NCBI GenBank assembly: GCA_021613535.1
Contig: CP075495.1
Location: 7,936,001-8,000,000 of the forward strand
Direction of reading: 5' to 3'
DNA: 64,000 nt
Source of the DNA: Adineta vaga
Taxonomy: Eukaryota > Animalia > Rotifera
Part shown: piece after piece, positions 18,800-57,440 of the stretch
Layout: every line of letters begins with the position of its first letter
Numbering within the stretch: the stretch's first letter is position 1
Notes under the pieces: model-generated
The model's database searches: none
The model's input: the letters and a program-made list of their open reading frames with translations, nothing else
Told to the model about the DNA's origin: nothing
Position numbers and translations under genes: made by a program

Positions 18800-19404
18800 G
18801 ATCTAAAAGAAAATATGAAAAATTTTCACATATAATCTTGCTTTCGATAGTCTCGCGTTGAACTTTATCATCATCGTCTTTTTCTCTTTTCTCACATACT
18901 TAACTACCCGAAGATGTTTAAAGAAAAAGAAAAAAAAATGACGGTGTCCGACGTGTTTTCACCCGTATTCTGATGTTGTATGCAAACGACATAACGACAG
19001 AAAATGAGCGACGCGTACCGACCAACATTACAGCAACAGAATATGCATCTTTAAATAGAAACGAGAAGCACAAAAAAAAACAGAATGGAAGCTTTTTCTC
19101 TTGCTCTACTATTTATATTAAAAGCAAAAAAAAGTTTTAAGTAGGTTTCATTCATCACTTAGTAATTGGATATTATTTATTGAATGCTTAAATAAATTCA
19201 AATAAGTCCAATAGTCAAGGATAACAAACAACATATAAAAAAAACAAAAGATACGTCAATGTTTTCACTATCTGTCGATTTGTTACAGCAGTGTAATTGC
19301 GTAATAACAAATATATTTCATCACTTGTGTAACATTTCAGTATAGAATCAAATATATATATATATATATAAACATCGTGTGTACAGTTGAAAAATAATAT
19401 CAAG

Positions 19405-20448
19405 ATGGCAATGGCAAGTGCGACGACAACAAATCAAACAGCTTTATGTTTGATTCCACCGGAAAATGTTTGGGAACAGATTCAAGCGATTCGTTCAACG
19501 AATGATAGAGCATATCCACGTTGGATGCCACATATTAATTTGATCTATCCTTTTGTACCAGAAAGTAATTTCGACAATATTAAAACACAATTAGAATTAG
19601 TTCTTCATCGACAAAAACCATTTTCAATTCAATTTGATCAAAATTCTTTTCATTATTTTCAACAAAAAGATAACGATTGTACATATCATCTTCAACCAAC
19701 GGACACTACGAACGTGATTGATTTACAAAAACTAATTCAAGATCAATTAATAAAAATCTGTAAGAAAAAACGTCCATTTGAAGCGCATCTTACACTTGGT
19801 CAAAGTAAAATCAAAATTATTGATAATGTATTTACAAAATTGAAATCGAATTGGTCAACAATTGAATTTACTGTTGATCGTATTTATATGATTAGTCGAG
19901 AAAATCATCCTGAAAATTTATTTACAATTAAAAATGAAATTCTTCTTTTAAATCAAAAAGACGAATTGAATGTTTCACAAGTAACATGTTCACCTACGAA
20001 TACTCTTAGTATCTTATCACCAAATGGATTTTCTACACGTGTTCATCAGTTATTTGAACGTACATCATTTCAACCATTGAAATCATTTCGAATTATTCTT
20101 GCTGATTATGAAAATGGTCCTATAAATAATGATTTACGTTCAAAATTAGAATCAACATTAAAATTTACAATCGAATTTGGACAAGATTCACTTGGATATG
20201 ATGAAACAAGTTCACGAGTTTTCTTAAAACCAAGCAATATCGAAGCAATACAACAGTTACAAATACTTGATCAAACGAAATATGATGGATCGTTAACTTT
20301 AGGTCATTTAAATAAAAATGATTTCAATCAAGTCTTGGATCGTTTCATTCAAAGTTGGCCAGGTGGAATGAACAGTATCGATATTGATCGAATACATTTA
20401 ATAGATGCAAATGATAAATTTAAATTTATCTTTCGTTTAAAAACTTAA
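19405..20448 (+). CDS. 2H phosphoesterase (2'-5' RNA ligase/LigT-like) with a second, degenerate 2H copy; intronless
   Basis: TALCLIPP...IQAIR...DRAYPRWMPHINLIYPFV and FEAHLTLGQ provide two His motifs. The C-terminal half aligns to the N-terminal half. First ATG at 19405. Confidence 0.85.
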   Translation: MAMASATTTNQTALCLIPPENVWEQIQAIRSTNDRAYPRWMPHINLIYPFVPESNFDNIKTQLELVLHRQKPFSIQFDQNSFHYFQQKDNDCTYHLQPTDTTNVIDLQKLIQDQLIKICKKKRPFEAHLTLGQSKIKIIDNVFTKLKSNWSTIEFTVDRIYMISRENHPENLFTIKNEILLLNQKDELNVSQVTCSPTNTLSILSPNGFSTRVHQLFERTSFQPLKSFRIILADYENGPINNDLRSKLESTLKFTIEFGQDSLGYDETSSRVFLKPSNIEAIQQLQILDQTKYDGSLTLGHLNKNDFNQVLDRFIQSWPGGMNSIDIDRIHLIDANDKFKFIFRLKT

Positions 20449-26884: not shown

Positions 26885-28871
26885 ATGTTGCGAGCATCTT
26901 TTTTCTTATTGATAGTAGTATGTGGTTTTATTCATGCACTATTGTATCCAACAGAAAGTGAAACAAGACAAGTAAAACTACTGGATGGTCTCTGGCATTT
27001 TCGACTCGATGAACAAGGTGTTGGAGAAAGTGAACGTTGGTTTGCTTTACCACAATTACCTGCCAACGATTTTCATGCCTGTACCAGCTTCTTACAATGA
27101 TATCACACAAAATATCACCATTCATCGACATATTGGATGGGTATGGTATGCACGAGATGTTTTTGTTCCGAAATCAGCAACGCTTCGTTGGGTACTACGA
27201 TTTCAAGCTGCTCATTATGAAAGTCGTGTTTGGGTTAATGGACAATCGGCTGTAAATCATTCTGGTGGACATTTACCATTTGAAGGTGATATAACACCAT
27301 TTATCGAAGGTAATAGTGAAAGTTCATCCAAAGTACGCATAATTGTAGCAATAAACAATACTCTTACACCAACAACATTACCACCAGGTGAATTACATAT
27401 TTATAGTCCTACTTATCGTGAATTAGAGACAGGATTTGATTTCTTTAATTATGCTGGTATTGATCGTTCTGTTATGCTGTATTCGACATCAACTACTTAT
27501 ATTCAAGATATTACTATTGATACTCAAAGTATTGATTATGATGCACAACATACAGCAACATCAGCTATTCTAACTTATTCTGTTACAATTGCTGGTGTTA
27601 ATTCAATCAATGCACTTCGTGTTCTAATCGAATTGTTAGATGCCAATGGAATGGTAGTTGCTAACAATACTGCTTCTCAGTCACGTCTTGTAGTTAACAA
27701 ACCAAATTTATGGCAACCATGTGGGATGAACCATACTCATCCATGTACAGAACATAGTTATCTGTATACTCTCCAAGTTACACTGTACAATGATGCATCA
27801 CAAACTGATATAATCGATATCTATCGAATTTCACATGTTGGTATTCGAACAATTCGACTAACAAATTCACAATTCTTAGTTAATGAACAACCATTTTATT
27901 TTCATGGTGCTAATGCACATGAAGATAGTGATATTCGAGGTAAAGGTTTTGATCATGTTATTCTTGCAAAACATTTTAATCTGTATGGTTGGTTACATGG
28001 AAATTCATTTCGAACATCTCATTATCCATATGCTGATGAATTCTATCATATGGCTGATCGTTTTGGTATTGCTATCATTGGTGAAACACCAGCTGTTGGA
28101 ATACGAAAAGCACAATATTTTTCATCAGCAACGCTCGAACATCATAAACGTGTGACAACTGAAATGATTAATCGTGATCGAAATCATCCTTCAGTACTCA
28201 TGTGGTCACTTGCGAATGAACCTGCATCTGACTTACCCGAAGCAAAAGATTATTTTAGTTCATTAGCTAATTTTACAAGACCAATAGCAGCTGGCCGTCC
28301 TATAACCTATGTTATCTCTGCTGGTTATCATAGTGATCAAGGTATACAATTCTTCGACATGATATGTGTGAATCGATACTTTGGATGGTACAGTCAATCA
28401 GGTCGTTTAGATCAAATTCCTGCTTTAGTATCTCAAGAACTATCAAATTGGCGACAAAGATTTCCGAACAAACCAATCCTGATGAGTGAATATGGAGCTG
28501 ATACAGTACCTGGTCTACACAATGATCCACCATTTATGTTTACTGAAGATTATCAAAGAGATTTTTATATTGCATATCATGCATCATTTGACAATGTTTC
28601 ATCTCTGATTCATCCTACTACTGGTTTTTTTGTTGGTGAATTACCTTGGAATATGTTTGATTTTGCTACTGAACAAAGTACTACTCGTGTTGGTGGTCTT
28701 AATCGTAAGGGTCTTTTTACACGTCAACGTCAACCCAAAGCAGCTGCTTATATAATTAAAAATCGTTATGAACAATTAGAAGCTGTACCTCATCACATTA
28801 AGCAATCAAATGAAATACGATTCGTTTATTTTTGTCTTACTTTGTATTCTAGATTTTGCTTTTACACATAA
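26885..28871 (+). CDS. GUSB: Beta-glucuronidase (GH2), secreted/lysosomal, intronless, with a frameshift at ~27062
   Basis: Signal peptide and LLYPTESETRQVKLLDGLW in one frame. MPVPASYND, DFFNYAGI, FRTSHYPY, WSLANEP (acid/base), SEYGAD (nucleophile) and NRKGLFTRQRQPK (GUS NxKG motif) in another frame. Confidence 0.9.
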
Positions 28872-38223: not shown

Positions 38224-42232
<4,009 letters not shown>

Positions 42233-42392
42233 GTTTATTGTAGTATAATGAAAATATATGCACTATAACAATCTAGAATCGATGTAAAAGAATAACTAAA
42301 AAATCCAGGAAAGATAGATTATATAGAGAAGAGAATGATGTATTAATTGACAGGACGGAGAAAGAAAAAAACGAAAAGGTAGTAACTATAAG

Positions 42393-42417
42393 AGAATTTT
42401 CTCGACCATTCGAGAAG
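42393..42417. promoter_or_regulatory. Heat shock element (five alternating nGAAn units)
   Basis: aGAAttTTCtcGACcaTTCgaGAAg, ~160 bp upstream of the HSP110 ATG. Confidence 0.85.
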
Positions 42418-43711
42418 AAGGATATGTATTTATATATTTATTTTACACAGAATGGTATTATATGGATGATAGTGTATTTAGTATTACTCATTCGATTGGA
42501 ATAGTCTGACCTCTGGTGAAAATATTATTCTGATCGGTTCATAAGAAGTATGTTCTAAGGTATTAAATGGGGTACAAAATGTGAAGTATATTCATGTCAA
42601 AAGACGATTGACGATCTGTTCTTCCTATATATCAAAGTTAAGCTATTGTTTAAAAGATAAACAAAACATATGGAAAAAAGAGAAGAAGATTCTAGTAATT
42701 TTATGATTTTTTTAAAATTTAAATTCATATTGTTATACTTTTCTCAAATTTCATAATATTTTCGACTCGAACATGGATCTCTATCTAGTAATCAAATATG
42801 ATGTAAATGGTAAGAATGATGACTTATGTATAGTGTTCTATTGCTTCTCCTATGATTTGTTGAAAGCTCAAATGACATATCTTATTCTAAAAGGATCTAT
42901 TTGCTTTTACATATGTACATAGATAAATAAAATTTGCATACTTGACATATGTCGTTTCCTTGTAGTCTAAAGATAGAAGTCTATCTATCAAAAATGTATG
43001 TCTCACTCTTTCATCGTAACGAGTAGGTGTCTCACTCTCATCTATCTATATTTATACATATACGTACATGAAAGATACTATCACAAGGTTGATAATGTCT
43101 ATTTATTCTTCTGAATTCCTCGGGCATTGTCTGTCATTCAATTGACAAGGAGAAGTGTTTGAGTACGCATTCTTTTTTTTTTCTTTTCAATATTGACAAA
43201 CCTTTTGCGAAGCACAGGATTAATTACAAAAATTCTTTAAATCAAAGATTTTTTTCTTCTGTACTACGTAGATATCAAATAATTTTATTATTATGGTAGA
43301 AAAATAAATCATCGAATGACTGCCAAGAAGTAGAGCAATATCAGTGCAATTTTTTTATTCTCCACCATAAGAACGTCTACACACGATAATCACTTTTGGT
43401 CATGCTTCGATTTCACTTGATCGTGCATGTAGATATGTTTCAGCTCAGGTAGATCGATTCAAACTAATAATAATGGAAATGGTTCATTATTTTTAGATAC
43501 TGAATGCTGTATCGATGAAGAAGTGCCTAATGCGGGTATTCTTTAAGTAGAAATAGGCAATCGGATTAAAAAAGTGAAAGAAAATGTTCTTTTTGCTGAA
43601 TGATTATTAAACCATATTATGAAACTCTTGAACTACAATCGGTTTTGTTTTTTCAATTGTCTAATGTTAGGTTTGTTTTAGTTACCTTTATTAAATTTTT
43701 TATTTTTGTAG

Positions 43712-44918
43712 GCTAAGATTCCTTTCTTGGTTGGCTTCACATTTGGATATTCAACATCTACTTGTGTATTTTCATCTTCATTAAAAAAATTCAAAGCGTT
43801 CCTTAGAATAATGCAGTACAAACTTCTACAATAACATCTATATCTGTGCGAGCTTGTTCTACTATCCTTGCAGTAACAACTTCAAATATAACCTCTTCTT
43901 TTCTGATAGCATCTTTTTTTAAATTTAATCTATTCTGTTGCGTCTTTAATAGTTCCAACAGTATCCGATTGATAAACATAATTTTTTGTTGTTGATGATC
44001 TCGTGTAATTTGACGATGTTTGAATATGTTGAATCAATCTATTTATTCGATCTCTTTTTTATCACCACCAATTCATAATATTAATCAATGATTACTAAGG
44101 AGAACTGACGATTTTCTTCACCTTTCAGAACTCGAAAATCTCTTTAGCATAAAAAAGCGAATCCTCTTTTGGTAAAAATATAGGATGTGGTCAATCCGAT
44201 TTAAATGAATCGTTGACAAGAACTTCGACTGCATCTCTTGTTCTCATCTTTTATCGCCCAGGGACTAATTACTGATAATTATGAAACAACTTATGAATTA
44301 ATACCATTTGAAGCTTCTTTCAATTGCTGATCAATCAAGAAAATCAAAGAAACTGAATGGTTTTCGTATCCTAGTCAGACCATCTTTTGTATATGCCTCA
44401 AGAATAGTATGGACTAATGCTATTACATGTTTCATTCAACTATTCATACCATGTTCAGGCCAAAAATATACATTCATCGCTGTATTTCGAGCAAGAAATG
44501 CTAATACAGTTTTTTCTGCATTCATATCGCTTGTTAGACGTTCACAATCTTTATGTCCAACATCAAGTTCGCAATCAATCACGGATGCATGACGAACATT
44601 AATTTAAATGAGTGTAACATTGAAGACATCTTTTAATAGAATATTAAAAAGCTTTAAACCATGGCAAACCATATCCCAAAGAGGGTGAGTCTAGGCATTT
44701 CTTATCATCTAATAAATTCAATATTGTTTTATCAGAATTATTAGCTTTTTTAACCAGAACTAATACTTCTTTACGAAATATTCACAAACACCTGAACCTG
44801 CTGCATTTCAACTGCACATATTTTAATACTTGTTGATGTTGGCCATATAAGCTCATTGATACATACCACCAGAGACAATCACGATCAATGTTTCCTTATC
44901 TTTTGATACTCTCGACAT
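43712..44918 (-). pseudogene. Heavily decayed coding remnant of unknown identity
   Basis: Stop- and frameshift-broken but protein-like minus-strand segments, e.g. MSRVSKDKETLIVIVSGGMYQ*, INVRHASVIDCELDVGHKDCERLTSDMNAEKTVLAFLARNTAMNVYFWPEHG, HRQITRDHQQQKIMFINRILLELLKTQQNRL...IVEQARTDIDVIVEV. Confidence 0.35.
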
Positions 44919-45640
44919 TTTAATTTCACAAAAATTTCTTACTACAAGTAGACAAAAAAATAAACAATTACCAATGTGAATGATATGTATATATGCGTAT
45001 TCAAAGTTGAAGTATATTGCTTTGCAATTGAAATAGAAGAAATTTCTTCAGTGGAAATATTTCAAAAAGACAGATAAAAAGAAAAATAAACCAAATATCT
45101 ATTATTCGATAGGAAAAGCATTGTATCTGTCTATTCAACTATTTTTTTTATTAGCATCCAATCTAATCAAAGGACCAAAAGTCCGACTAAGCGAGATACG
45201 ATTTGGTTATAACTCTCTACAATTTCACAGTTGTACTTCTTTCTTCGATTTAGAGATTGTCTTTTAATACTATCTTTTACAACAGAAATCAATACGAATT
45301 TTTAATGAGATAAACTGAATAAAATTCTTCCTTTTTTTATCAGAACACATGTGTAAAAATATATCAAAGTAGTAAACAAATAATGAAAGGGCTATATATA
45401 GTGTACCATGTAAATCATCCGTTCGCCATTTTCTACTATATTTATAATTCCAATCGATTAGATAACAATCATAGTGATCTGTTGGACCACCTATTTTTAA
45501 TGAACATTTATGAAAATTGTTTGAGATGACGGCATCTTGTCAGCTTCTCTGCTTAATCTGACACTGTCATTCATCATTCATTATGTATATTTTATATAAA
45601 ACAAAGAACACAGAGAATAGAAGAATGATTACATATTTAG

Positions 45641-47197
45641 CTAAGCTATTTCTTTCATCGTTTTGATAAGAGCCAGACGAATAAGTGATTGTACCACACA
45701 ATTTAGCTCATTAGAAAATCCATCAAATACATTCACACAACCTTGTTGACAAGTTTGATTATATGCTTTATTAAATTCATTTAACATAATATCTCGCAAT
45801 AACCAACGAGCACTTGTCCATTGATGATCAGACATTTCTATCCAAGCTGTTACACCACTATTACTTTGTGAATCTCCAGCTAATGTTAATTGAAAAGCAG
45901 ATAATTCTAATTGAATTATCTCATCAAATGAGCCTGTATTCATTCGATTTGGTTGATAATTTGTTTCAATAAAACTCATATCGAAATCCAATGGTGCTAA
46001 TAAAAAAGATGATGATGATGATGATAATAATTTAATAACTAAATTATTCGGATGAGCATTACAATGAACACCTAATTCATCTGTATAAGTACCCCAACTA
46101 ATACGATAATGATGCATTAGACCAAGAATAGATCCACATTCGAAACCAAATCGTTTGTAAACTAAACATAAGAGATCTGCTAAGTGTTTGTTAGTTTGTA
46201 AATAATTATTTAAAACATTAATATGTGTAGTCCACACACGTTGCCAATGATGTTCATCAATATCAGCAGGAATTTCATGGGAAAAATGTGATGATCGGTG
46301 AAGCCATTTAGATTTGTGATAATCAATTGGTCGAAGAATATTTGTTAATGACGCAAACCAAGTTGATAATGGTACAAGTTGTTTACTACTCGTTTCTGAT
46401 TCTGTTAAACGTTCTGAAGGAAATAATGAAATTAAATTTGATTGATCAACAGGATGTGATTGTTCATTTGTAATGATCAACGAAAATAATTGTTCTAAAC
46501 CATATAAAACATGATCAGATAAACGTTTATTACCTAATGTTTCCATTAAAATACAACAACGTTGAATGTTTGACCATTGATGTAAGGAAATATCTTGTAC
46601 AGTTGGAATATCAGAATGAATCTTATCATCAGATAGTTTGTATTCGAACCAACCAATTGAAATATTTGCAGATTGAATTCTATGTGAAGTAAGTAGCTGT
46701 GTGATATAATGTGTCATGTACAATTCACGATGAGTTGTATGAAAAAAAGCACATCCACGAATAGTAAATTTAATATCTGAATTCGAGATAGATTTAATTG
46801 GAAAACCATCTGTATTATCACCACAACCTTTCAATCGATACCATTTTGATGAATGAGTTTTGATCAGCGCAGATCGTGTACCAGAAACAATTCCTTTCAT
46901 AGGACTTGAAAGCTTTGTTTTAATCAATGGATATTGAAATATATTATGTAGTGAATGAGGATTAACGATAGTTGAATCTATTTCGACAGATGTTGTTGGC
47001 AATTCTGGAAGAATCAATTGATGATGAAGATGATTATCATTATCTGTTGATAATACTGAATTTAGAGGAGAAGTATCTTTATTAGTACGACATTCAGATT
47101 CAGGATTACTTAAATGAACTGAACCACAATGATGAGCAAAGTTAATCTTTATAGAACCATAAAATAACAATTCATCGTCTGATAATGCATCCATCAT
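45641..47197 (-). CDS. Intronless 518-aa kinase-fold protein, SelO/YdiU-like pseudokinase
   Basis: SGTRSALI...WYRLKGCG...RGCAFFHTTHRELYMT...SWG...HCNAHPNNLV...LAPLDFDMS are colinear with SelO GDGRxxL, LKGAG, GRAVLRSTIRE, HGVMNTDN, LDYG. Confidence 0.7.
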   Translation of the reverse strand: MMDALSDDELLFYGSIKINFAHHCGSVHLSNPESECRTNKDTSPLNSVLSTDNDNHLHHQLILPELPTTSVEIDSTIVNPHSLHNIFQYPLIKTKLSSPMKGIVSGTRSALIKTHSSKWYRLKGCGDNTDGFPIKSISNSDIKFTIRGCAFFHTTHRELYMTHYITQLLTSHRIQSANISIGWFEYKLSDDKIHSDIPTVQDISLHQWSNIQRCCILMETLGNKRLSDHVLYGLEQLFSLIITNEQSHPVDQSNLISLFPSERLTESETSSKQLVPLSTWFASLTNILRPIDYHKSKWLHRSSHFSHEIPADIDEHHWQRVWTTHINVLNNYLQTNKHLADLLCLVYKRFGFECGSILGLMHHYRISWGTYTDELGVHCNAHPNNLVIKLLSSSSSSFLLAPLDFDMSFIETNYQPNRMNTGSFDEIIQLELSAFQLTLAGDSQSNSGVTAWIEMSDHQWTSARWLLRDIMLNEFNKAYNQTCQQGCVNVFDGFSNELNCVVQSLIRLALIKTMKEIA

Positions 47198-48577: not shown

Positions 48578-50278
48578 TTAAATAATTGGTGCTGTTTGTG
48601 GGACAAGTTTAAACGAGGTAATACGACGTTTATGATAGATAATATAAGTAATTATAGCAATAACTAACGTCAGACAAAGACAAGATGCAATAATGGCAAA
48701 TGGAATCCATGAGACAGTTAAATATTTCGCTGATTGATGTTCTTTAGAATCTGGATGAACACGTTTCATAACTGGTGTTGAGAATTCATTCTCGATCTCT
48801 TCTGGATCAAGTAATGATGGTGATATTGTTATTGGTTGATTATCAACAGGTATTGTATTAAATTCATTATCATCATATTGAACTCCTTCGATTGGATTAT
48901 ATGTTGAACTAGTTTTTCTATCATTTCCATCATCATATGTCTTTTCAAAAGGATAATCCGGTATCATATTATCATTGAAATCAACTGATGGTGGTTCAAA
49001 TGGTGCAATTGGTGGTGATGATGGTGTAACAACTGGTGGTGTATTTTGTTTTTGTTGATCTTCAATATCTTCTTTTTGTTTTCGTGTAAAATATTCCGAT
49101 ACAATTGGACAGGAAGAAAATAAACAACGATCATTATTTGTTGATTGACATTTAACTAATTGTGATCCATCATCAACCATATTATTAAGAAAAACTAATA
49201 TACAATCACAATCTGGATTTTCATCAGGTAAATATATTATTAAACCAAGCATTCGACGACGATTAATAAAATCTGCTAATGAACAACTTGTACTACCTTG
49301 TAAAGTTGAAAATTGTACATAACGAACATCTAATTGTTTTAAAGCTGTTAATGAATTTAAACTTTCAACATCGAGAATTTTTAAATATGAACCAAGAATT
49401 AATGTTTCAATCTGTTTAACATGTTTTAAAGCACCATCAGCAATACGTTCGGCATCGAATGAAACTGATTTCAATGTCGGAATTCTTTCTAAACCATTGA
49501 GAATTTTTGGTGTAATAGAAACATCCGGTTGAATAATATTTAAACCTGTTAATTGAGTATAATTTAGAAATGATAATGCATCTAATGTACGCATTTTATG
49601 TGCTTCAATTGTATAAGATTGAACTGGAAATGGTGGAAATTCTTCACTATTCACAGTATCAATCATTCGAGTAATTTTTAATGATTGAATATGTCCAGTA
49701 AAATCTTTTAATAGATTTGGTTCATGTGCAACAATTGCACCTTCAAGATTTAAATGTGTAATATTTGTATTATTAAAGATTAATTCAAATGGTGATGATA
49801 ATGAATCGCCATACATTGAAAGTTCATTAACATGTAGATTATCAAAAGCATTTTGATCGAAATTTATTGTTTTAGCTTTCACTGGATGTAATTCTATCGT
49901 TAAACGTTTATTTGTAGATGTAATACCTTGAAATAAATTAGCAAAGGAAGATGCTCGTGCATGAAATGATTGAAAATTTTGAAAACGAAATGTCATTGAA
50001 ACAGATTTTCTTGCTACATTTGGTAGAAGTTGATTGAGAATAAGAAAATAATGTCTTCCAAGTTCAATATCTTCATCGGTTTCAATTTTGAAATCAATTG
50101 AATGAAATTTTTTCGGTGAACTTATAGTTGATGAAGTGAGTATTAATGGTGCAAATTTTGTCATTGTACAACGAATTTCATTGGAATCATAACAAGTACA
50201 TCGTATGCCAACGAATACATCACATGAATATGTTAATGAAATTGATAGAAGAAAAATATAGACATGAAAAAATGCCAT
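48578..50278 (-). CDS. Type I transmembrane leucine-rich-repeat protein, single coding exon
   Basis: Signal peptide, N-terminal Cys cap (CTCY...C), LRR-like spacing (FDNLHVNELSM, FLNYTQLTGLNI, LNSLTALKQLDV), LRRCT-like NPDCDC, Pro/Thr stalk, TM helix, short tail. Splice acceptor just upstream at 50286-50287. Confidence 0.85.
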   Translation of the reverse strand: MAFFHVYIFLLSISLTYSCDVFVGIRCTCYDSNEIRCTMTKFAPLILTSSTISSPKKFHSIDFKIETDEDIELGRHYFLILNQLLPNVARKSVSMTFRFQNFQSFHARASSFANLFQGITSTNKRLTIELHPVKAKTINFDQNAFDNLHVNELSMYGDSLSSPFELIFNNTNITHLNLEGAIVAHEPNLLKDFTGHIQSLKITRMIDTVNSEEFPPFPVQSYTIEAHKMRTLDALSFLNYTQLTGLNIIQPDVSITPKILNGLERIPTLKSVSFDAERIADGALKHVKQIETLILGSYLKILDVESLNSLTALKQLDVRYVQFSTLQGSTSCSLADFINRRRMLGLIIYLPDENPDCDCILVFLNNMVDDGSQLVKCQSTNNDRCLFSSCPIVSEYFTRKQKEDIEDQQKQNTPPVVTPSSPPIAPFEPPSVDFNDNMIPDYPFEKTYDDGNDRKTSSTYNPIEGVQYDDNEFNTIPVDNQPITISPSLLDPEEIENEFSTPVMKRVHPDSKEHQSAKYLTVSWIPFAIIASCLCLTLVIAIITYIIYHKRRITSFKLVPQTAPII

Positions 50279-56200: not shown

Positions 56201-56642
56201 TTCGACTTTTTTTCTCATCCGTTGTACTATAACGTTTTATATACAGAGACAATATTGTCTGGTTTATCAGTTTACTACTGTCGCCGTTCTGTCACTCTGT
56301 TATCAACATCATACGTAGATACAAATATATAATACAGGTAAATAAAGCTAACGTTAACTTTTTTTACTTAAATAATAACAAAGACAATTACTTTTTGATG
56401 ACGTGTCTTAGAAAAACGAAGGACAGAACCTTGTTACAATCCTATAAACTTTTCATAATGTAATAATCATTTACTCTTCAAGATCATTGAATACACCATG
56501 TACGATCATTATCATTCCAGAATCAGATCGAAGTAACATGATTAAGTAAAAGGATGGTACTATGATGGATATGCATGTACATTTTAGAAGTAATTTATAT
56601 AGACTAGGTTCTCTCTTTTTCTTTTCAATATTTTGCATAGAT

Positions 56643-57440
56643 ATGATTACAAAAGAACACCAATATCATTTGAATTGGTCTATTGAGTTAACTGATTCAC
56701 TTTGGTTTCACATTGCTACCTATTTAACTATTAATGATATTCATCGTTTAACGCGTACATGTTCTCGTCTACATACACTTTTAACTAATAATGATTTTTG
56801 GTCTTATCTCATTCGTAAACAATTTGGTCATGCAATATGGTATCGTTTGATAAAAAATTCATCTATATTTACTGATAAAAATCAAATATCTGATTCCGTT
56901 AATAAAGTATGTCGTTCGAAATTAATCTATTTAGATTTAATTAAACGTAAACGGATCGCATTCTCCGAATTTAATCGATTTACATTGGATACAAATCGAA
57001 ATTATACAACAATCATTGATCCATCTAGTTTAAACGGTTCCGTACTTCATATTAAAGATTCACTGGAGCTTTGTTATACATTACATATTGAAACACTTTT
57101 CAAAGATATTTTACCAGGCAAATACGATGTCATATGGCGTATGAAATTGGATTTACCCTATATGTTAGGAGAAACGGAATTTTTCGCTGTTGCTGAGCAA
57201 ATTAATCCCGGTCATATAGCATATATGCGATGGACACAGGACGATTTTTCATCAATGTATAGATGCTTTTATTGTGATTTAACTAAAACAAATCTATGGT
57301 TTTATCAAAGTATAGGTTATATCGAAATTCATGGAGATAAACCATCTAATGTTTATATATCAATGACAAATTATGATTCAATTCATGCTAAATATGGAGT
57401 ATATTTAGATTATGTAGAATTAAAGCATTATTTAGAATAG
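56643..57440 (+). CDS. F-box protein with a phloem protein 2 (PP2)-like lectin C-terminal domain
   Basis: F-box ELTDSLWFHIATYLTINDIHRLTRTCSRLHTLL..FW. C-terminal ILPGKYDVIWRMKL...WFYQSIGYIEI...VYISMTN...KYGVYLDYVELK follows the PP2 pattern. Start uncertain (acceptor at 56640). Confidence 0.7.
   Translation: MITKEHQYHLNWSIELTDSLWFHIATYLTINDIHRLTRTCSRLHTLLTNNDFWSYLIRKQFGHAIWYRLIKNSSIFTDKNQISDSVNKVCRSKLIYLDLIKRKRIAFSEFNRFTLDTNRNYTTIIDPSSLNGSVLHIKDSLELCYTLHIETLFKDILPGKYDVIWRMKLDLPYMLGETEFFAVAEQINPGHIAYMRWTQDDFSSMYRCFYCDLTKTNLWFYQSIGYIEIHGDKPSNVYISMTNYDSIHAKYGVYLDYVELKHYLE

Follow-up and report, generated by a model that had tools for sequence, protein, structure and literature searches.

We propose that protists and bdelloid rotifers share a protein-modification module with two components, a SelO-like kinase-fold enzyme and a dedicated ThiF/MoeB-type E1-like adenylating enzyme. 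In Adineta vaga, the enzyme is encoded by a 518-aa open reading frame in the window (the whole stretch of DNA analyzed, 64,000 nucleotides). It belongs to a large, unnamed and undescribed kinase-fold family and is very probably coupled functionally to its ThiF partner. The pair may carry out a form of protein modification that has not been described before in eukaryotes.

An intact and apparently expressed gene

The reading frame is intact from ATG to TAG on the minus strand (Table 1), and the gene is single copy, with one match in its own A. vaga genome (100.8 Mb, 6 contigs searched). It is apparently expressed: RNA-like contigs cover the ORF and leave the flanks uncovered. One colinear piece (45689-47152) contains no joint, as expected from the initial annotation, which had called the gene intronless. 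The RNA status of these contigs is the guess of the tool; one such contig shows a spliced joint in a neighboring gene. Comparison of the query with four other bdelloid copies gave dN/dS values of 0.16-0.30, indicating that the gene is under purifying selection. Contamination was ruled out because the order LRR gene, 518-aa gene, Hsp70-family gene is maintained in Adineta ricciae; GC3 (0.14) is also like that of the neighboring genes.

Other features of the region were recorded. In A. ricciae, an 849-aa gene lies between the counterpart of the 518-aa gene and the Hsp70-family gene. In the A. vaga window, the LRR gene (48578-50278) is intronless, encodes a membrane protein with a signal peptide and is syntenic in A. 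ricciae. The interval 42100-45600 has no open frame above 96 aa on either strand, and a spliced RNA-like contig maps at 44602-45017. Further away are an intronless glycosyl hydrolase family 2 gene (26985-28871, 628 aa), an ORF with two 2'-5' RNA ligase/2H phosphoesterase matches (19387-20448) and an F-box protein whose plant-like architecture includes a weak phloem protein 2 domain (56562-57440).

Table 1. Features of the 518-aa gene, in window coordinates
Feature	Position	Strand	Basis
Intronless ORF, 518 aa, predicted protein-kinase-like fold with N-terminal extension	45641..47197	-	ORF, model
Extra N-lobe strand PLIK, near-invariant Lys93 (K 190/194)	46919..46930	-	model and alignment
G-loop equivalent SGTRSALI	46862..46885	-	invariant Arg108, Ser109 in alignment
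beta3 strand WYRLKGCG, catalytic Lys123 (K 198/198), Arg121 (R 196/198)	46820..46843	-	alignment
RG-x9-E segment ending in alphaC Glu158	46724..46759	-	alignment
beta5, hinge and start of alphaD; invariant Arg225 (201/201)	46511..46558	-	alignment
Poorly conserved insertion of ~95 residues (241-335) between alphaD and alphaE	46193..46477	-	model, alignment
SWGTYTD motif and beta-hairpin, inserted just N-terminal of the catalytic loop; Trp368, Asp373 near-invariant	46079..46099	-	model, alignment
Catalytic loop HCNAHPNNLV: His378, Asn380, His382, Asn384, metal-binding Asn385	46037..46066	-	alignment
DFG equivalent PLDFDMS: Asp404 and second invariant acid Asp406	45974..45994	-	alignment
Tail of six residues, TMKEIA, with its stop, beyond the last helix; candidate substrate of the partner E1	45641..45661	-	model, alignment

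A predicted kinase-like fold with its longest alignment to SelO

According to a confident AlphaFold model (pLDDT 93.9, pTM 0.94), the protein is a protein-kinase-like fold, bilobal and with the beta3 lysine, alphaC glutamate, catalytic-loop asparagine and DFG aspartate all present. The model, together with Foldseek and structural alignment matches, bears out the kinase-like fold first suggested from the motifs. In a Foldseek search, YdiU/SelO ranked first (E 5e-4) and SidJ was a weak match (E 3e-3). With VIA-align, SelO/YdiU aligned at Z 11.2-12.2 over 249-262 residues, from residue 1 and including the N-terminal extension, and was the longest structural match. Bud32/PRPK reached Z 12.3-13.1 over ~200 residues, tied with or slightly above SelO; Bub1/BubR1 likewise tie with SelO in Z, and the near tie was repeated with a second homolog (SelO Z 12.0 over 252 residues). 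The nearest named ESM clusters were MchC/SelO by features (0.95) and SelO by shape (TM 0.42).

At the sequence level, Pfam (E<=1), NCBIfam, PADLOC and PDB sequences gave no match to the query, and the Pfam SelO model (PF02696) left it unmatched. In profile-profile comparisons, run on the whole protein and lobe by lobe, SelO and MchC scored probabilities below 1%, with a shallow SelO profile (7-10 sequences) and a single MchC sequence. Despite this non-significant result, the N-lobe motifs fall in register with those of SelO and MchC. The initial annotation had noted that SelO signatures were missing, and our analysis extends this to the family: neither the query nor any of the 223 homologs tested contains YxGHQF, GDGR, TPYSR, HGxxNTDN or the C-terminal CxxC. 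The query also lacks DYG and a C-terminal Cys/Sec. It had also been argued that the protein is not the SELENOO ortholog. We agree, and reject orthology, because the A. vaga genome holds two ordinary SelO genes elsewhere (L003:1405-2871, on G000:C4, and G000:C6:4090956-4091963). One of these has no introns, a hydrophobic extension at its N-terminus and a C-terminal Cys; the other contains introns.

The proposal of a distinct SelO-fold family therefore holds in part. SelO is the top Foldseek match and gives the longest alignment, but it ties in Z with Bud32/PRPK and the profile comparisons are not significant. The family is probably a sister branch of SelO/MchC.

A predicted basic adenine pocket and a rewired catalytic loop

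The motifs first reported (SGTRSALI, WYRLKGCG, GCAFFHTTHRE, SWG...HCNAHPNNLV and PLDFDMS) are all present and in that order. Among ~200 non-bdelloid homologs (~25-38% identity), residues S105, G106, R108, S109, R121, K123, G124, G126, G148, E158, R225, W368, H378, N380, H382, N385, D404 and D406 are 97-100% conserved. Since they are near-invariant across so many distant homologs, the motifs are not due to chance. The Gly-to-Glu distance of 10 is the same in SelO and MchC, as the initial annotation had stated for SelO.

In ordinary kinases, the N-lobe positions of PKA Val57 and Ala70 sandwich the adenine. Mapped through the secondary structure of the model, these two positions would correspond to invariant Ser109, in the place of the adenine-covering Val, and invariant Arg121, at the VAIK-Ala position where SelO has Gln or His and MchC has Gln. 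Arg108 is in register with SelO GDGR and MchC GGAR, and alphaD starts with invariant Arg225. The hinge position 219 is Glu, Arg or Lys, and the residue expected beneath the adenine, at position 387, remains hydrophobic in the alignment. SelO binds ATP flipped and buries its phosphates against Lys113, Arg176 and Arg183 (PMC8097203); from the alignment, Arg225 is a candidate equivalent of the phosphate-binding Arg183. Because the adenine pocket would be basic, we consider it reasonably likely, from alignment and model, that the kinase fold binds ATP in the flipped orientation and transfers a nucleotide.

The catalytic loop is rewired, as had been proposed. The position of the HRD Asp is Asn380 in 198/199 homologs, and the catalytic Asp of the HRD/HGD loop, a feature of ePKs, Bud32/RIO and APH/choline kinases, is absent from the query. 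In SelO and NiRAN, an Asp preceding the metal-binding Asn acts as a substitute base (PMC8863163). At the corresponding position 384, we found Asn in 173/198 homologs and Asp in 24/198, and His382, two residues earlier, is invariant.

An unlikely alternative to flipped-ATP chemistry is that the protein is an atypical phosphotransferase of the Bud32/RIO/WaaP kind, working in the ordinary direction on the E1, its product or a small molecule, with His382 or Asp406 replacing the HRD Asp. The top Z of Bud32/PRPK would fit such an enzyme, as would the intact nucleotide-metal ligands (Lys123, Glu158, Asn385, Asp404), the predominance of Glu at position 219 and the DxD, which resembles choline and aminoglycoside kinases. 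This reading is, however, difficult to reconcile with invariant Arg121 and Ser109 at the adenine-sandwiching positions, with invariant Arg225, with the missing catalytic Asp, or with the SelO-like N-terminal extension and KGxG / G-x9-E register. Loss of both the HRD Asp and the substitute Asp of SelO in most members could also mean that the protein is catalytically dead and serves the E1 partner as a nucleotide-binding scaffold or regulator. That is highly improbable, as ~20 polar residues of the active site stay invariant from protists to rotifers and bacteria, more than scaffolds usually retain.

The family is widespread in protists

A word search retrieved 114 homologs, those of bdelloids at 45-74% identity and a broad set of others at 23-41%. 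A profile search counted 1,374 clusters at 50% identity, of which 444 had E <1e-30 and the best 150 were listed. Among the matches listed, named members include an apusomonad, a choanoflagellate, amoebozoans, foraminifera, another rhizarian, ciliates, diplonemids, a centrohelid, a haptophyte and a dinoflagellate. No named animal outside the bdelloids occurs among the matches, most of which carry no species name, and no viral relative or viral contig was found. In the literature searched, which comprised papers open without subscription, none joins SelO-like folds with ThiF/E1 or describes the family. KINtaro families lacking Pfam ids (HOMD1-5, TOXO1 and others) were compared by name only, so that a prior mention is possible.

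In a FastTree tree built without 16 near-identical bdelloid rows and partial sequences, the bdelloid copies are monophyletic (support 1.0) and nested within sequences of protists. A recent bacterial origin was rejected on this ground. The nearest group is foraminiferal, with a support of 0.58, and no donor can be named at that value. The earlier suggestion of a probable non-metazoan origin agrees with the lack of a named animal homolog beyond bdelloids among the matches. The relatives are mostly protist, not prokaryotic. Transfer from a protist to an early bdelloid would be the simpler reading of the tree, the alternative being retention in bdelloids with loss elsewhere.

Some single homologs carry additional domains. 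P0064 has an acylphosphatase domain inside the kinase N-lobe (residues 133-194), a single case suggestive of acyl-phosphate or acyl-adenylate chemistry. P0154, P0138 and P0160 have N-terminal MYND finger, alcohol dehydrogenase and rhomboid domains, respectively; P0138 and P0160 may be merged gene models.

A dedicated ThiF/E1-like partner

An N-terminal ThiF/E1 domain was found in 14/229 retrieved homologs, and in 12 of the 19 with an N-terminal extension longer than 150 aa. Among these 14, one is decayed and another is a gene model with a frameshift. Fusions are seen in at least four places of the tree and include Pterocystis, two Diplonema species and Prorocentrum. A further ThiF-kinase fusion (L068:1-2955) shows an in-frame stop within its ThiF part, which could reflect another genetic code, an intron or an error.

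In A. vaga, the partner is a separate intronless gene (G000:C2:15228560-15229711, minus strand; protein P0231), located 7.2 Mb from the 518-aa gene on the same chromosome. P0231 matches the fused ThiF domain at E 2e-47 and MOCS3 at E 2e-14, and is distinct from the rotifer's own MOCS3. The partner is 63-81% identical among bdelloids and was also detected in Thecamonas, Balamuthia, Arcella and Entosiphon; its named range matches that of the kinase-fold family in bdelloids, Thecamonas and amoebozoans. On two other rotifer-type contigs (L021 and L022), both genes lie head-to-tail with 55 and 610 bp between them, and the pair has no small conserved gene beside it.

Structural alignment assigns the partner domain to the E1 fold (Z range 24-27; MoeB Z 27.4, UBA5 Z 26.1). 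Its adenylation motifs are intact (GxGGxG, SNLNRQ, the Lys and the metal Asp) and its zinc cysteines are mostly kept. The partner falls below every NCBIfam cut-off. It differs from MoeB/MOCS3 in carrying N-x-I-D-x-G-x-x-F-D where they have D-x-x-D-x-x-x-x-R. A conserved E1 crossover-loop Cys is absent, with T-R-x-x-G-S in the place where MoeB/MOCS3 carry it, in a register set by eye; MAFFT left the loop unaligned. No E2 domain is fused or adjacent in the eukaryotic loci. Searches of the rotifer genome for a bacterial Ubl, a bacterial E2 and a papain-like domain, weak searches run with no positive control, returned nothing. Three protist proteins (P0137, P0203 and P0206) carry an additional N-terminal papain-like domain; this call is a lead, made from motif (Gln, Cys, His, Asp) and atlas scores below 0.9. 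A model of the fusion (pTM 0.69, from a mostly unpaired alignment) shows no clear interface.

The kinase-fold protein ends in a conserved small residue

E1 substrates typically end in a conserved small residue. In the kinase-fold family, the stop falls in the same register in 197 of the 213 eukaryotic homologs that are complete to the last helix, and genomic loci have real stop codons directly after the tail. The consensus is T-x-D/E-x-I/V-A. Among non-bdelloid homologs, 153/189 (81%) end in Ala or Gly, against a background of 15%. After thinning to below 50, 40 and 35% identity, the Ala/Gly share is 77, 60 and 53%, and the share ending in Ala, Gly, Ser or Cys is 86, 77 and 82%; we claim no p-value because the sequences are related. 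Bdelloid tails alternate between Ala, Gly and Ser, and ~11% of members end in other residues. For comparison, 5/49 partner ThiF proteins end in Ala or Gly. The tail is missing from four bacterial proteins that have their own Ubl gene and from one fusion with a decayed ThiF (single case); one fusion with a peptidase domain ends in Gly plus three extra residues (single case).

In the model, the short tail is ordered (pLDDT 89 in the last block), and it may simply pack on the protein with its carboxylate bound, whereas the tail of cGAS is long and disordered. In CBASS operons that contain no Ubl, Cap2 activates the C-terminus of the cGAS enzyme (bioRxiv 10.1101/2022.03.31.486616).

Bacterial relatives are embedded in Ubl operons

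The initial annotation had advised inspecting the neighbors of any prokaryotic homologs. In rare bacterial homologs, the kinase fold lies C-terminal to a JAB domain, in a conserved operon of the order Ubl, E1, E2 (one or two), JAB/kinase. A GTDB pattern scan gave 1 locus, and the form occurs in 1/339 genomes of its class. The bacterial E1 is not an ortholog of the eukaryotic partner (63 bits versus 90 for MOCS3), and the kinase fold is therefore linked to an E1 in two different settings.

In two groups, the Ubl-like ORFs (L018:7369-7599, L002:470-697 and L042:735-956 across all groups) finish with PQAVK or PRVAK before a real TAA stop; in a third group, the last residues are KEGGR. As there is no exposed Gly-Gly, they may need trimming by the JAB domain. 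Other genes at these loci include a divergent operon beside the bacterial genes (L018:569-6818 and L038:106-2101) with tubulin/FtsZ-like, Hsp70/actin-like and vWA-like products, identified from motifs by eye. A vWA membrane protein is encoded downstream in L002. In L042 (2814-3758 and 5959-8288), two tandem E2-like genes precede the JAB-kinase, which is followed by an ATPase matching the PADLOC SspH/mad8 models and a phospholipase D-like ORF.

These operons, in which a tail-less JAB-kinase fusion accompanies a separate Ubl, an E1 and one or two E2 genes, bear on whether the eukaryotic pair acts on a third molecule. The E1 would then activate an undiscovered Ubl, a peptide or a small carboxylate, the kinase-fold protein would AMPylate or ligate that molecule or regulate the E1, and the conserved tail would be structural. 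In the bacterial setting, since the operon has its own Ubl, the kinase fold does sit in a pathway whose E1 substrate is another molecule. MchC as the nearest named ESM cluster and the well-ordered tail also agree with such a role. As parallels, MceJ/MchC assists in joining a siderophore to the C-terminus of a peptide, and SidJ shuts off the SidE ligases. Against a third molecule stand the lack of bacterial Ubl or E2 homologs in the rotifer genome (in the same weak, uncontrolled searches) and of a small conserved gene beside the L021/L022 pair. It also leaves unexplained why the chain ends on a small residue in exact register. We regard a third-molecule substrate as rather unlikely.

A proposed two-step mechanism

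In the mechanism that we propose, the partner E1 would first adenylate the kinase-fold protein at its C-terminal carboxylate, at the expense of ATP and with no Ubl needed. By analogy with CBASS, we lean slightly towards this step being correct. An E1 acting on the enzyme's own C-terminus would account for why neither Ubl nor E2 was found for the eukaryotic pair. Because the partner has no conserved crossover Cys and no E2 was found, the acyl-adenylate would then be resolved directly by a nucleophile, either an amine, a lipid or a sulfur donor. The acyl-adenylate formed by SidJ provides a precedent (bioRxiv 10.1101/2021.04.13.439722). The modification of the tail would switch on or localize the kinase-fold enzyme, and would itself be trimmed or removed by the papain-like domain that some protist members carry.

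In the second step, ATP would be bound flipped, its phosphates in a pocket formed by Arg108, Arg121, Lys123 and Arg225. The group transferred would be AMP, or another NMP, and not the gamma-phosphate, and the residue beside the acceptor would be His382 in place of an Asp. That both steps hold together, adenylation of the kinase-fold C-terminus by the E1 and nucleotide transfer from flipped ATP, is possible but somewhat short of probable. Several results weigh against it: the Z of Bud32/PRPK, the non-significant profile comparisons, the Asn that mostly stands where SelO and NiRAN use an Asp, the hydrophobic position 387, the short and ordered tail, the fusion model without a clear interface, the ~11% of members with other terminal residues, and a bacterial E1 that is not orthologous to the partner. 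More tentative still, again by analogy, is a ubiquitin-free conjugation system of most protist supergroups and bdelloids, in which the E1 would couple the kinase-fold C-terminus to a target and the papain-like domain would act as eraser, a counterpart of bacterial cGASylation built from unrelated parts.

The SelO-like folds studied so far (SelO, SidJ and NiRAN) all proved to do unexpected chemistry. Here, a further large unnamed family with a different catalytic loop is found in tractable organisms (Tetrahymena, Physarum, Diplonema and Adineta), and, thanks to its partner gene, the system can be tested with just two purified proteins. Should the tail prove to be the substrate of the E1, eukaryotes would possess an E1 pathway that modifies an enzyme directly, without a Ubl, as known until now from CBASS immunity in bacteria. 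For rotifer biology, our results describe a two-gene pathway, not a lone gene, common to bdelloids and protists and kept under selection.

Comparison with known systems

Bud32/PRPK, RIO and WaaP give the best or tied core-fold Z, over an aligned length of ~200 residues at 12-14% identity; they keep the catalytic Asp and hydrophobic adenine-pocket residues, and Bud32/PRPK binds ATP in the ordinary orientation. SelO/YdiU (PF02696) and MchC/MceJ resemble the query in combining a kinase-like fold with an N-terminal extension, a G-x-R loop and no HRD Asp, and SelO and MchC also share the polar residue two before the beta3 Lys, KGxG and Gly-x9-Glu. In contrast to SelO, the query has Asn plus His for the NTDN Asp, DFD for DYG, a different C-terminal half and no C-terminal Cys/Sec, and it differs from both SelO and MchC in its link to an E1 enzyme. 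SidJ and NiRAN are kinase folds without the HRD Asp that bind the nucleotide flipped and adenylate or NMPylate (bioRxiv 10.1101/2021.04.13.439722; PMC8863163); the query differs from them in having no sequence similarity, a different catalytic loop, no calmodulin site and no viral context.

On the E1 side, ThiF, MoeB, UBA5 and MccB share the E1 fold and the adenylation motifs with the partner. The logic that we propose parallels that of Cap2/Cap3 in type II CBASS (cGASylation), where the target of the E1 is the C-terminus, a conserved small residue, of an enzyme that transfers nucleotides, with no Ubl and a peptidase alongside. A dedicated E1 linked to the enzyme gene and a conserved small C-terminal residue are type II CBASS-like features, and both are present here. 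However, our module is eukaryotic, its enzyme has a kinase fold instead of a CD-NTase and a short tail, no E2 and no conserved E1 crossover Cys were found in it, and conjugation is a proposal of this work. CD-NTase and effector genes are absent, and PADLOC has no match for the query. The module is thus not a member of CBASS; at most, it works like CBASS.
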